Shown in pieces: positions 1 to 50,090 of a stretch of DNA of 64,000 nt. The stretch's first letter is position 1, and each line of letters opens with the position of its first letter. The DNA is from Blepharisma stoltei ATCC 30299 (Eukaryota > Protista > Ciliophora), in NCBI GenBank assembly GCA_965603825.1, contig CBFDEM010000053.1, forward strand, positions 1 to 64,000, given 5' to 3'. A program made the translations under genes and the position numbers. Below the pieces are notes generated by a model. That model had not been told where the DNA came from. It ran no database searches and was given only the letters and a program-made list of their open reading frames with translations.

Positions 1-3000
1 AACACCCTAACACCCTAACACCCTAACACCCTAACACCCTAACACCCTAACACCCTAACACCCTAACACCCTAACACCCTAACCCTACACCCTAACACCC
101 TAACACCCTAACACCCTAACACCCCTAACACCCTAACACCCTAACACCCTAACACCCTAACACCCTAACACCCTAACACCCTAACACCCTACACCCTAAC
201 GACCCTAAACACCCTAACACCCTAACTACCCTAACACCCTAACACCCTAACACCCTAACACCCTAACACCCTAACACCCTAACACCCTAACACCCTAACA
301 CCCTAACACCCTAACACCCTAACACCCTAACACCCTAACACCCTAACACCCTAACACCCTAACACCCTAACACCCTAACACCCTAACACCCTAACACCCT
401 AACACCCTAACACCCTAACACCCTAACACCCTAACACCCTAACACCCTAACACCCTAACACCCTAACACCCTAACACCCTAACACCCTAACACCCTAACA
501 CCCTAACACCCTAACACCCTAACACCCTAACACCCTAACACCCTAACACCCTAACACCCTAACACCCTAACACCCTAACACCCTAACACCCTAACACCCT
601 AACACCCTAACACCCTAAACACCCTAACACCCTAACACCCTAACACCCTAACACCCTAACACCCTAACACCCTAACACCCTAACACCCTAACACCCTAAC
701 ACCCTAACACCCTAACACCCTAACACCCTAACACCCTAACACCCTAACACCCTAACACCCTAACACCCTAACACCCTAACACCCTAACACCCTAACACCC
801 TAACACCCTAACACCCTAACACCCTAACACCCTAACACCCTAACACCCTAACACCCTAACACCCTAACACCCTAACACCCTAACACCCTAACACCCTAAC
901 ACCCTAACACCCTAACACCCTAACACCCTAACACCCTAACACCCTAACACCCTAACACCCTAACACCCTAACACCCTAACACCCTAACACCCTAACACCC
1001 TAACACCCTAACACCCTAACACCCTAACACCCTAACACCCTAACACCCTAACACCCTAACACCCTAACACCCTAACACCCTAACACCCTAACACCCTAAC
1101 ACCCTAACACCCTAACACCCTAACACCCTAACACCCTAACACCCTAACACCCTAACACCCTAACACCCTAACACCCTAACACCCTAACACCCTAACACCC
1201 TAACACCCTAACACCCTAACACCCTAACACCCTAACACCCTAACACCCTAACACCCTAACACCCTAACACCCTAACACCCTAACACCCTAACACCCTAAC
1301 ACCCTAACACCCTAACACCCTAACACCCTAACACCCTAACACCCTAACACCCTAACACCCTAACACCCTAACACCCTAACACCCTAACACCCTAACACCC
1401 TAACACCCTAACACCCTAACACCCTAACACCCTAACACCCTAACACCCTAACACCCTAACACCCTAACACCCTAACACCCTAACACCCTAACACCCTAAC
1501 ACCCTAACACCCTAACACCCTAACACCCTAACACCCTAACACCCTAACACCCTAACACCCTAACACCCTAACACCCTAACACCCTAACACCCTAACACCC
1601 TAACACCCTAACACCCTAACACCCTAACACCCTAACACCCTAACACCCTAACACCCTAACACCCTAACACCCTAACACCCTAACACCCTAACACCCTAAC
1701 ACCCTAACACCCTAACACCCTAACACCCTAACACCCTAACACCCTAACACCCTAACACCCTAACACCCTAACACCCTAACACCCTAACACCCTAACACCC
1801 TAACACCCTAACACCCTAACACCCTAACACCCTAACACCCTAACACCCTAACACCCTAACACCCTAACACCCTAACACCCTAACACCCTAACACCCTAAC
1901 ACCCTAACACCCTAACACCCTAACACCCTAACACCCTAACACCCTAACACCCTAACACCCTAACACCCTAACACCCTAACACCCTAACACCCTAACACCC
2001 TAACACCCTAACACCCTAACACCCTAACACCCTAACACCCTAACACCCTAACACCCTAACACCCTAACACCCTAACACCCTAACACCCTAACACCCTAAC
2101 ACCCTAACACCCTAACACCCTAACACCCTAACACCCTAACACCCTAACACCCTAACACCCTAACACCCTAACACCCTAACACCCTAACACCCTAACACCC
2201 TAACACCCTAACACCCTAACACCCTAACACCCTAACACCCTAACACCCTAACACCCTAACACCCTAACACCCTAACACCCTAACACCCTAACACCCTAAC
2301 ACCCTAACACCCTAACACCCTAACACCCTAACACCCTAACACCCTAACACCCTAACACCCTAACACCCTAACACCCTAACACCCTAACACCCTAACACCC
2401 TAACACCCTAACACCCTAACACCCTAACACCCTAACACCCTAACACCCTAACACCCTAACACCCTAACACCCTAACACCCTAACACCCTAACACCCTAAC
2501 ACCCTAACACCCTAACACCCTAACACCCTAACACCCTAACACCCTAACACCCTAACACCCTAACACCCTAACACCCTAACACCCTAACACCCTAACACCC
2601 TAACACCCTAACACCCTAACACCCTAACACCCTAACACCCTAACACCCTAACACCCTAACACCCTAACACCCTAACACCCTAACACCCTAACACCCTAAC
2701 ACCCTAACACCCTAACACCCTAACACCCTAACACCCTAACACCCTAACACCCTAACACCCTAACACCCTAACACCCTAACACCCTAACACCCTAACACCC
2801 TAACACCCTAACACCCTAACACCCTAACACCCTAACACCCTAACACCCTAACACCCTAACACCCTAACACCCTAACACCCTAACACCCTAACACCCTAAC
2901 ACCCTAACACCCTAACACCCTAACACCCTAACACCCTAACACCCTAACACCCTAACACCCTAACACCCTAACACCCTAACACCCTAACACCCTAACACCC

Positions 3001-3506
3001 TAACACCCTAACACCCTAACACCCTAACACCCTAACACCCTAACACCCTAACACCCTAACACCCTAACACCCTAACACCCTAACACCCTAACACCCTAAC
3101 ACCCTAACACCCTAACACCCTAACACCCTAACACCCTAACACCCTAACACCCTAACACCCTAACACCCTAACACCCTAACACCCTAACACCCTAACACCC
3201 TAACACCCTAACACCCTAACACCCTAACACCCTAACACCCTAACACCCTAACACCCTAACACCCTAACACCCTAACACCCTAACACCCTAACACCCTAAC
3301 ACCCTAACACCCTAACACCCTAACACCCTAACACCCTAACACCCTAACACCCTAACACCCTAACACCCTAACACCCTAACACCCTAACACCCTAACACCC
3401 TAACACCCTAACACCCTAACACCCTAACACCCTAACACCCTAACACCCTAACACCCTAACACCCTAACACCCTAACACCCTAACACCCTAACACCCTAAC
3501 ACCCTA
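1..3506. repeat. Telomere, (CCCTAACA)n, C-rich strand on +
   Basis: Near-perfect 8-mer tandem array from base 1 to ...ACCCTA at 3506, then an abrupt switch to AT-rich unique sequence. A few indel variants occur in the first ~620 nt. CCCTAACA is the heterotrich (Stentor/Blepharisma) telomere unit. Confidence 0.98.
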
Positions 3507-47868: not shown

Positions 47869-49128
47869 ATGGAAGAGAAAAACAATGGCATTTTTACACA
47901 AGGCGATTTAAAAGAAAAACGCAGAAAAGAGAGGATCCCTGATATCAGTTTTGACGTAGATGGCGATGGGTCAGTTAGTCCTCTTGATTATTTTATTGCT
48001 AAAAGATATGATAAAAATCAAGATGGGAAGCTTGATGCAAAAGAAAAGATTCTGGCTCAAGAGTTCATGAACAAGGACCTTAAGAATTTCCTGATAGGAG
48101 GCGAAACTCATGGAGCCCAAAGGCCTCTTCGGCTGCTGCAAGTCAAAGGAAAACCGATTTACGATAACGACTACACTGTCATAACAGATGCAAAAAAAAG
48201 TCCTGGAAGAACTAAAAGTGAGCTTGAAAAACTCAGAAAGCAAGAAAGAATTGACATCGCATCAAAATTCGCAGAGAAACACATTAAGTTCAAAAAACAA
48301 ATTTTGGAGTTTGAGAGAAAAGAAAATCGCGAAAATTTGAGCTCAAGGAGAATAAAAATTTTAAAAACAGATACTCGTGAAAATGCTAGCAGGAGAGATC
48401 ATAGGAAAAGGGACTTGAGCCTAGATTATTATCCCTGCCCAAAGTATCTTTCAAAATCTGAACTGGATTCGGTAAGAAGACAGCAGAATATTGATGATCT
48501 TGAAAGATCGTTCAATTATAAGCATAAAAGCTGAATTGATCAAATGCTGGAAAGGGAAAACTCAATGCAGATCAATGAAAAACAGATGAACAGCAAAAGC
48601 TTCAAAGAAATCATAGAAAAACAGAAAAAAGAAGACTTCGAGCATCACGCTCAGACTTTCGTTAATTACAAACTGGGAGTTCATGGAAAAGAATTGCCGA
48701 GTTTCAGTGAAAATTGTAAAGAGTATTGAGAATTTTCTCAAGGGTATACCCCCTCACCAACACACACCACTTTGTCCAAGCTGAAAATGGACCGAAAGTT
48801 TAGCTCTCGGAAATCTTCATGTGTTTCAGAGAATTCAATGTCTTTTCCTCAACGATTTCGCTCAGTAACACCTGAAATTCCATTAAAGCCCAATGAAATC
48901 TGGCCGATCCCTGAAAAGCCCCCTATCTCACCTGATGAGAAATCCCCAATCAAAAGACCGGTTTTTAAGGAAAAATTCAGTAATTCCTTTTTAAGCATGG
49001 TGATGCCAAATTCCATTATAATCACAAACCGCAATAAGCCAGACAGAAGTGCCTACATCCGAAACAGAGCAAAAAGCGAGCTGAGAAGCTTGGATAGCAA
49101 GATAATCCGATCCAAAGGATTTATCTAA
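47869..49128 (+). CDS. ~419-aa protein with an N-terminal EF-hand pair
   Basis: Three in-frame ORFs joined by TGA; loops DVDGDGSVSPLD and DKNQDGKLDAKE. Confidence 0.8.
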
Positions 49129-49167
49129 TTAATTTAAATCTAATAGCTGTATAATCTATTTACTGAA

Positions 49168-49669
49168 TTATAAGTCTAACCAGAACAAAACAGCAGGCAC
49201 CTTGCATAGTTCTTTCTGCACTTTCGGATCAACTTGTTTGAACCCTAAGCATCGGAGAGTTCTATAAATTTGGTTCCTATTGGGCAATTCTCTATACACC
49301 GCAATCACAATCTTGTCAGCACGTTCCCACTCAGCGAACCTGGAGAGGTTCTCAAACGTGGTAAGGTGCATGATTGGTAAAGCTTTTGTGTAAAGAAGCC
49401 GCCCAGACAGAAAGCACTCAGCGATGACCAGCCTTTTTTCCAGAGGTAGACGTATAGTCAGCTTATAGAAGCTGCACTCAGGATTAAGTGCGTCTACGAA
49501 TCCTTGCTTGAATTCCTCAACGACTGGTTCAGGTAGTGGGTCGTGGTCTGGGACATCAAAAACATTCATGAGTTGTAAATTGAGAGAAGATACTTAGAGA
49601 ATCGAAGTTCTGGCCGGAAGGTTCGTCACTATTTAGGGATGACTCGGTTGATTCGTCACTGCTCTCCAT
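49168..49669 (-). CDS. OAZ: Ornithine decarboxylase antizyme, ORF1 (49669-49559) + ORF2 (49557-49168) joined by a predicted +1 ribosomal frameshift (~166 aa)
   Basis: ORF2 has the antizyme pattern FENLSRFAEWERADKIVIAVYRELPNRNQIYRTLRCLGFKQV. ORF1 (MESSDESTESS...HECF, 37 codons) ends at TTT-TGA-T, followed by DVP in the +1 frame, as at known antizyme shift sites. Confidence 0.85.
49553..49564 (-). promoter_or_regulatory. Predicted +1 programmed frameshift site TGT TTT TGA TGT
   Basis: The P-site UUU (49561-49559) can re-pair on UUU (49560-49558); the next +1 codon is GAT (Asp). Same layout as the metazoan TGC-TCC-TGA-TG and UUU-UGA antizyme sites. Confidence 0.75.
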
Positions 49670-50090
49670 TGTGATAATGGATAATAAAAGATATAAACTA
49701 GCCTCTTAGAAAATGACTTTAAAAACAGAAATCAGAATACCTAAAAAATTAAAATAAAATGTTCTTAAGCAGGCCTTAATTTTAAATGTAAAAATCACAA
49801 AAATAATGAAATTATGTTATTCTTTAAACTCTATTCTAATAGCCAACAGTTTCAGGTAAGATGTCTGTTGTTGCTTTTTATTTTTGGGTATTTTCTAATT
49901 AAATCCCCAAAATTCACAGATTTTTTCTTTTTTGCATTCCCGGCGTAATCCTATATTTAAAAATTTTTCAAAAATTCAAAATAATTTCCTTTTCTCCTAA
50001 AATCCTTATTTTTCTCTCCTCTCATATAAAGACGCGCTTGATTAGTGGACTAATCCTAAAGATGGCAATAATTTATGGAATCTGTGAAGG

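Follow-up and report, generated by a model that had tools for sequence, protein, structure and literature searches.

An apparently inherited antizyme frameshift site at a UGA sense codon in Blepharisma stoltei

The textbook metabolite-sensing recoding switch is the +1 frameshift of ODC antizyme, accompanied in many, though not all, antizyme branches by a conserved 3′ RNA stimulator (a pseudoknot or stem-loop). What becomes of such a switch when the stop codon at its shift site is reassigned to an amino acid? The question is raised by a locus within a 64,000-nucleotide stretch of the genome of Blepharisma stoltei ATCC 30299 (hereafter, the window), where a short ORF1 and a +1 ORF2 meet at UUU-UGA (Table 1). 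UUU-UGA is a known antizyme shift site, found in protists, mushrooms, and C. elegans-related nematodes, and UGA occupies approximately 97% of the reviewed antizyme shift sites (PMC1874602). A reading of the sequence alone had proposed that this gene keeps its site in a genome where UGA encodes Trp. The coordinates and codon counts given there for the locus were all re-found, including the ATG in the +1 frame and, upon recounting, the length, three TGA codons, and terminal TAA of the zero-frame continuation.

Table 1. Features of the antizyme locus on contig CBFDEM010000053.1 (numbering of the window).
Feature	Position	Strand	Details
5′ leader, antizyme transcript	49670..49713	-	At least 13, up to approximately 44 nt, from 5′ ends of RNA-type contigs
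ORF1	49559..49669	-	37 codons from ATG 49669; Ser/acid-rich start
Candidate +1 shift site, UUU-UGA	49556..49561	-	TTT 49561-49559, P-site Phe; TGA 49558-49556, A site
ORF2, antizyme domain, +1 frame	49168..49557	-	129 codons, then TAA 49170-49168; opens DVPDHDP
ATG in ORF2 frame, 4 codons 5′ of the shift site	49567..49569	-	Possible bypass start; a 133-aa database gene model begins here
Zero-frame continuation (UGA = Trp)	49484..49558	-	24 codons, 3 TGA, to TAA 49486-49484; 61 aa including ORF1
GT..AG stretch across the shift site	49548..49563	-	16 nt; splicing would fuse ORF1 and ORF2; judged not an intron
Short 3′ UTR	49133..49167	-	Contig X1 ends at 49133, X6 at 49160

That UGA is a sense codon in the window, as had been proposed, is borne out by both codon counts and the published code. 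The long ORFs of the window hold 71 TGA and 89 TGG codons, and the B. stoltei genome has been described as having a CCCTAACA telomere, UGA as Trp, and introns of 15-16 nt (bioRxiv 10.1101/2021.12.14.471607). The window opens with telomere repeats of the same CCCTAACA type, a tract of approximately 3.5 kb (positions 1-3505), the published mode being 209 bp and the reported range extending up to a few kilobases. Blepharisma decodes UGA by means of a near-cognate tRNA-Trp(CCA) whose anticodon stem has 4 bp, with no anticodon editing; such ciliates have no known nuclear tRNA-Trp(UCA) (bioRxiv 10.1101/2023.10.09.561518). The base following a sense TGA, counted in the long ORFs of the window and of a second region (G000:C53:100001-300000), is A in 50% of cases (33% after TGG) and C in 7% (19% after TGG).

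The sequence-only reading had left the identity of ORF2 to a profile search. By that measure the check failed, as ORF2 scored 12.4 bits (E 0.15) against Pfam ODC_AZ (PF02100), below the curated cut-off of 24.2; what stood was the antizyme assignment itself, which rests on the homolog family and on fold. A full HMMER search recovered a family of ORF2 homologs at 27-36% identity, while a word-indexed homolog search returned the self-match alone and two scans of JGI metagenome contigs gave no match. One family member (P0006, E 2.9e-8 to ORF2) reaches 24.9 bits against ODC_AZ, above the cut-off, and ODC_AZ is the best or sole Pfam match for several others. The family profile searched against the PDB has antizyme 1 as its top four matches, weakly (E 0.025-0.096). 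The predicted structural model (pLDDT 90.5) places mammalian antizyme 1 at Foldseek ranks 1-3 (E 2.2e-6 to 2.9e-4), and VIA-align scores antizyme at Z 12.9 (rmsd 2.7 over 113 residues), with the next best at Z 9.3; the best structural match is human antizyme bound to ODC. A GNAT acetyltransferase was considered and set aside because the fold is nearer antizyme in both comparisons. A pseudogene was likewise rejected. ORF2 is intact and, by protein comparison, 97% identical to an MMETSP protein (P0017). We take ORF2 to be a divergent antizyme on these sequence and model comparisons.

ODC-family genes are present in the B. stoltei genome. The closest ODC-like paralogs (L020 and L021) have a common leader block, located approximately 45-75 nt before the ODC start; one of its frames translates as SPFYxI-stop, and in L021 it lacks an AUG. 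This block may encode a regulatory upstream peptide or simply reflect paralog similarity. There are also several divergent ODC-family paralogs (L022-L025), two of them in tandem on contig C48, and some could be antizyme-inhibitor-like.

The frame break at the site could in principle be removed by splicing or stem from an indel, both of which the sequence-only reading had asked to be checked. Contigs from four runs and three organisms cross the site without a gap or joint; contigs hide rare forms, and the RNA status of these was guessed from their covering genes and largely missing the 49736-49849 spacer. The same-species contig X1 covers 49133-49713 with 0 differences, and contigs from a second (X5, 49208-49697) and a third organism (X6, 49160-49682) carry 23 and 32 differences, respectively, the absence of gaps at the site being what was scored for these two, not the bases. 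All three extend upstream of ATG 49669, placing ORF1 within the transcript, where a 5′ end downstream of that ATG had been the concern. X6 carries 22 loose letters beyond 49682, which we take to be a template-switch cDNA adapter. An adapter-like end 13 nt upstream of ATG 49669 indicates that the transcript includes ORF1. Another contig, X2 (48805-49647), spans the antizyme gene together with the convergent plus-strand neighbor, the end of which (stop at 49128) the antizyme 3′ UTR faces; such a contig is to be expected, as genes of this genome have been described as overlapping at their 3′ ends.

A minority of transcripts might nonetheless splice out the 16-nt GT..AG stretch (49563-49548) and so fuse the ORFs, or the assembly or strain might carry an indel. 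The length suits a Blepharisma intron, removal would restore the frame, and contigs drop rare variants. The stretch has its only internal A at position 8, however, and so no branch-point A where one belongs (position 10 or 11); in each of the 499 16-nt Blepharisma introns, an A falls at positions 9-11 (PMC9942806 supplement). GT..AG is also absent at the site in homologs, the T run is just five long, and no joint, gap, or indel appears in the four runs. On these grounds we rejected both the intron and the assembly indel, and regard this explanation as very improbable. The mRNA is unspliced, and ORF2 is out of frame with ATG 49669.

The two-ORF layout is conserved beyond B. stoltei. NTT-TGA occupies the same junction in nine other loci (L005 in two copies, L007, L008, L010, L013, L015, L016, and L046), where ORF1 has 34-36 codons (L005b counted from the homologous ATG) and the +1 ORF2, in the eight measured, 128-131 codons. 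Three of the homolog contigs contain 15-nt introns, which marks the contigs as heterotrich. As the ORF2s of these loci are just approximately 22-33% identical where measured, NTT-TGA at the same place is more than chance would give. The comparison upholds the proposal that the site has been kept in a UGA = Trp genome, and it supports the UUU-UGA of the window as an inherited antizyme shift site.

These loci span both genetic codes. L010 uses the standard code (0 TGA and 27 TGG in flanking genes), and L013 probably does as well (0 TGA, 12 TGG). Judging from alignments, L008 uses UGA = Trp: Trp is the aligned residue at three TGA codons of its neighboring malate dehydrogenase and at one of a RING protein, and its flanking genes hold 7 TGA and 11 TGG. 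L005 likely does so too (3 TGA, 3 TGG); its tandem antizyme copies are 62% identical, both with TTT-TGA. The L008 malate dehydrogenase is 74-75% identical to that of B. stoltei, as distant as the L013 enzyme, so L008 is no close relative of B. stoltei. Three of the site-keeping loci belong to two further ciliates with UGA = Trp (likely in the case of L005), so B. stoltei does not stand alone in keeping the site, and the argument for selection gains strength. Both pairs of ENA metagenome contigs involved (L008/L009 and L005/L006) are heterotrich-like, with 15-nt introns, UGA = Trp, and UAA/UAG stops. The L008 and L005 antizymes group with that of L013 (no in-frame TGA among 12 Trp codons); these ciliates may have changed the code on their own or be an as yet unplaced relative of Blepharisma.

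Next to the site, the evidence points to ORF1 being translated into protein. ATG 49669 has a start-context score of +1.5, above 94% of internal ATGs; ATG 49569 scores a poor -3.3, below 95% of likely start codons. The ORF1 profile gives 10 bits in the ORF1 frame and approximately -2 in the other two, with 3-4% of shuffles equaling it. The good context at 49669, the poor one at 49569, and a modest profile match in the right frame only together support translation of ORF1. Its Ser/acid-rich beginning is common to the homologous ORF1s and to the N-termini of fused paralogs described below. In L005, L007, L008, L010, L013, L015, and L016, the ORF1 ATG directly follows TAA, mostly as TATAA-ATG, unlike the CACA-ATG of the window.

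The in-frame ATG at 49569 offers a route around the shift, in which ORF2 would start there by leaky scanning or re-initiation, and ORF1 with its readthrough would act as an overlapping repressive uORF, a layout that fused paralogs do use. No ATG lies between 49669 and 49569, and in the predicted model the 133-aa product folds as the full antizyme domain. An ATG occupies the equivalent place in three of the four site-keeping UGA = Trp loci (window, L008, and L005a) and is lacking in L007, L010, L013, L015, and L016, although this sample is small, the loci are related, and the ATG arises from ORF1 codons of the type xAT-Gxx. The fourth locus, L005b, has no such ATG and still keeps the site. Together with the poor context of ATG 49569, and with the retention of NTT-TGA and of the ORF1 N-terminus left unexplained, this makes initiation at 49569 an unlikely account of how ORF2 is expressed.

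Downstream of the site, the zero-frame run has 18-127 codons in homologs, with unrelated sequences, showing that its product is not conserved. A conserved function for the 61-aa product was rejected, as neither length nor sequence is kept, and by this comparison it is probably waste. Pseudoknot-free folding revealed no conserved 3′ structure: z-scores were -0.6, +0.7, and -2.5 at three lengths in the window and -2.1 to +1.1 in homologs, whose structures are unlike one another.

The shift has been lost elsewhere in the same genome. B. stoltei encodes two further antizymes, each a single 166-aa ORF with the frames fused. ORF1 of the two-ORF genes has its homolog in their N-terminus (YSFILGR), which counts in favor of a joined ORF1-ORF2 product. 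The predicted shifted product of the window has the same length as P0028, P0029, P0030, and P0009; its 166 residues are the sum of ORF1 and ORF2, each of which was searched and aligned on its own. Two more fused copies (L012 and L004) come from another UGA = Trp ciliate (run SRR24908292), giving four in UGA = Trp genomes with L001 and L003. L004 is the nearest relative of the window copy (support 100/99 in a midpoint-rooted ORF2 tree with weak deeper forks). On this tree, retention of the site with at least two losses appears simpler than regain, and retention is preferred because the site of the window stands where outgroups have it. The F followed by D/E that the +1 reading of the site encodes is not kept in the fused paralogs, which suggests that the protein does not need these residues.

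Three of the four fused copies, comprising the two B. stoltei paralogs and one from the other species, have in common an overlapping uORF of exactly 20 codons ending LSS-stop (L001:1418-1480, L003:1415-1477, and L012:7993-8055), whose out-of-frame ATG lies 8 nt upstream of the main ATG. This uORF may be a replacement for the lost frameshift control.

With two shift-less antizymes in the genome, there is less need for the window copy as a sensor. Its site could then be a relic of a standard-code ancestor, yielding little antizyme or an unregulated trickle, with control passed to the uORF-bearing fused paralogs. The four fused copies fit such a history, as do the features of the window copy, which is the most divergent (a long branch of approximately 1.1 changes per residue) and lacks the ORF1 motif YSFxxxR that nearly all other copies keep. 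TTT-TGA is also tolerated in ordinary genes: across approximately 64,000 codons, depletion of in-frame TTT-TGA was not significant (TTT precedes 8 of 222 TGA and 19 of 429 TGG; p 0.68). From this small sample, bare UUU-UGA would not be strongly slippery, unless the sample size misleads. Set against a relic are the intact ORF2 with its near-identical MMETSP relative; the reading phase, ORF1 length, and site, which have all survived that long branch; and L005 and L008, which keep both the shift site and the ORF1 motif. We consider a relic improbable.

The anatomy of the shift site is well supported, and from it we infer that ribosomes shift where a sense codon is decoded slowly. tRNA-Phe would sit on UUU in the P site, with UGA, a codon without a cognate tRNA, in the A site. 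Reading by the near-cognate 4-bp-stem tRNA-Trp(CCA), under weak competition from eRF1, would leave the A site open. In a fraction of ribosomes, tRNA-Phe would re-pair one base on, from UUU to UUU, the +1 codon being UUU again, and translation would continue at GAU to give an antizyme of 37 + 129 = 166 residues. Unshifted ribosomes would insert Trp and stop 24 codons later. Slow A-site decoding is a general trigger of +1 shifts (PMC1874602; PMC5009743), and the sequence-only suggestion of slow Trp decoding of UGA accords well with the near-cognate tRNA used by Blepharisma. It is the combination of a slow A site with UUU-to-UUU re-pairing that leads us to this mechanism.

An alternative is that the frameshift occurs while UGA is still a stop for eRF1 in its local context, so that the usual polyamine sensor, termination versus shift, survives. 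B. japonicum eRF1 does recognize UGA weakly in vitro, a weakly expressed Ser67 eRF1 paralog exists, and UGA is depleted 25-30 codons before stops (bioRxiv 10.1101/2023.10.09.561518), a depletion that we also find (6 TGA versus 34 TGG within 30 codons of stops). Residual termination would in addition keep the normal sign of polyamine control. The site, however, lies outside the zone of such competition, 130 codons ahead of the ORF2 stop and more than 400 nt from the RNA 3′ end, and Trp decoding is the sole reading of UGA observed in B. stoltei (bioRxiv 10.1101/2023.10.09.561518). Termination at this codon is, in our judgment, rather unlikely.

That some frameshifting takes place, whether at a slow sense codon or through residual termination, we hold to be probable. 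The fuller claim, that the antizyme gene is expressed and still depends on +1 ribosomal frameshifting although the codon at the site is now sense, seems to us evenly balanced. The lost YSFxxxR motif, the long branch, a fused gene (L004) as the nearest relative, the tolerance of TTT-TGA in ordinary genes, and the failure of pseudoknot-free folding to reveal a conserved 3′ structure all count against it.

How polyamines would act on a shift at a sense codon is less predictable. Spermidine, in human cells, raises the near-cognate decoding of UGA more than 20-fold, and its effect on OAZ1 is exerted via termination (PMC9841425). Carried over by analogy, the human effect would mean that polyamines could lower shifting in B. 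stoltei. If shifting occurs, the prospect that polyamines still raise it falls slightly short of even. The most far-reaching version is a polyamine sensor without termination, in which +1 slippage races near-cognate Trp decoding, retained by at least two UGA = Trp heterotrich lineages, with sister paralogs having swapped the shift for a conserved overlapping uORF; taken as a whole, we view this as speculative and somewhat unlikely.

Apart from the A-site codon, the locus resembles the OAZ1 family in its short ORF1, a +1 ORF2 with the antizyme fold, UUU-UGA, the U after the site, a Cys codon before the P-site codon, and ODC in the genome. It differs in that its UGA is sense (Trp), where the reviewed cases have a stop, in that no conserved 3′ stimulator was found, and in that ribosomes failing to shift would read on past the site. 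By sequence comparison, the antizyme shift site is conserved and its A-site codon has turned sense, within an otherwise known system. Among ciliates, the reviews cover a single case, the frameshift-free gene of Tetrahymena thermophila (PMC1874602; PMC5009743), which resembles the fused B. stoltei paralogs and L004/L012, whereas the window copy retains the two-ORF layout. Loss of the Tetrahymena frameshift has been tied to UGA reassignment (PMC5009743); UGA is, however, the sole Tetrahymena stop (PMC6935857), so Tetrahymena sets no precedent for a genome in which UGA is sense.

Two other systems bear comparison. The yeast Ty1, ABP140, and EST3 +1 shifts occur at slow sense codons (PMC5009743), and the proposed shift would be of the Ty1 type, placed on an inherited antizyme site; the yeast delay comes from a scarce cognate tRNA, the one proposed here from near-cognate decoding of a reassigned stop. 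Euplotes, also a ciliate with a reassigned UGA and +1 shifts, has genome-wide stop-codon frameshifting (PMC10235951) that is abundant, at real stops, and non-regulatory, in contrast to one conserved site at a reassigned codon in a genome where TTT-TGA is elsewhere read in frame. Literature searches pairing antizyme with Blepharisma, Stentor, Condylostoma, Blastocrithidia, or stop-codon reassignment, in which subscription journals were thinly covered, returned no such case.

Reporter work indicates that polyamines mainly weaken termination at UGA. A UGA = Trp gene could serve as a natural test of the switch without its stop codon. Here, in a species that can be cultured and whose genome is sequenced, a natural gene would split a slow A site from termination. 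Such a gene could show whether polyamine sensing requires the release factor, and it could report the decoding speed of a reassigned stop. With retention and loss both found in one genome, B. stoltei also bears on the fate of stop-dependent switches when the genetic code changes.
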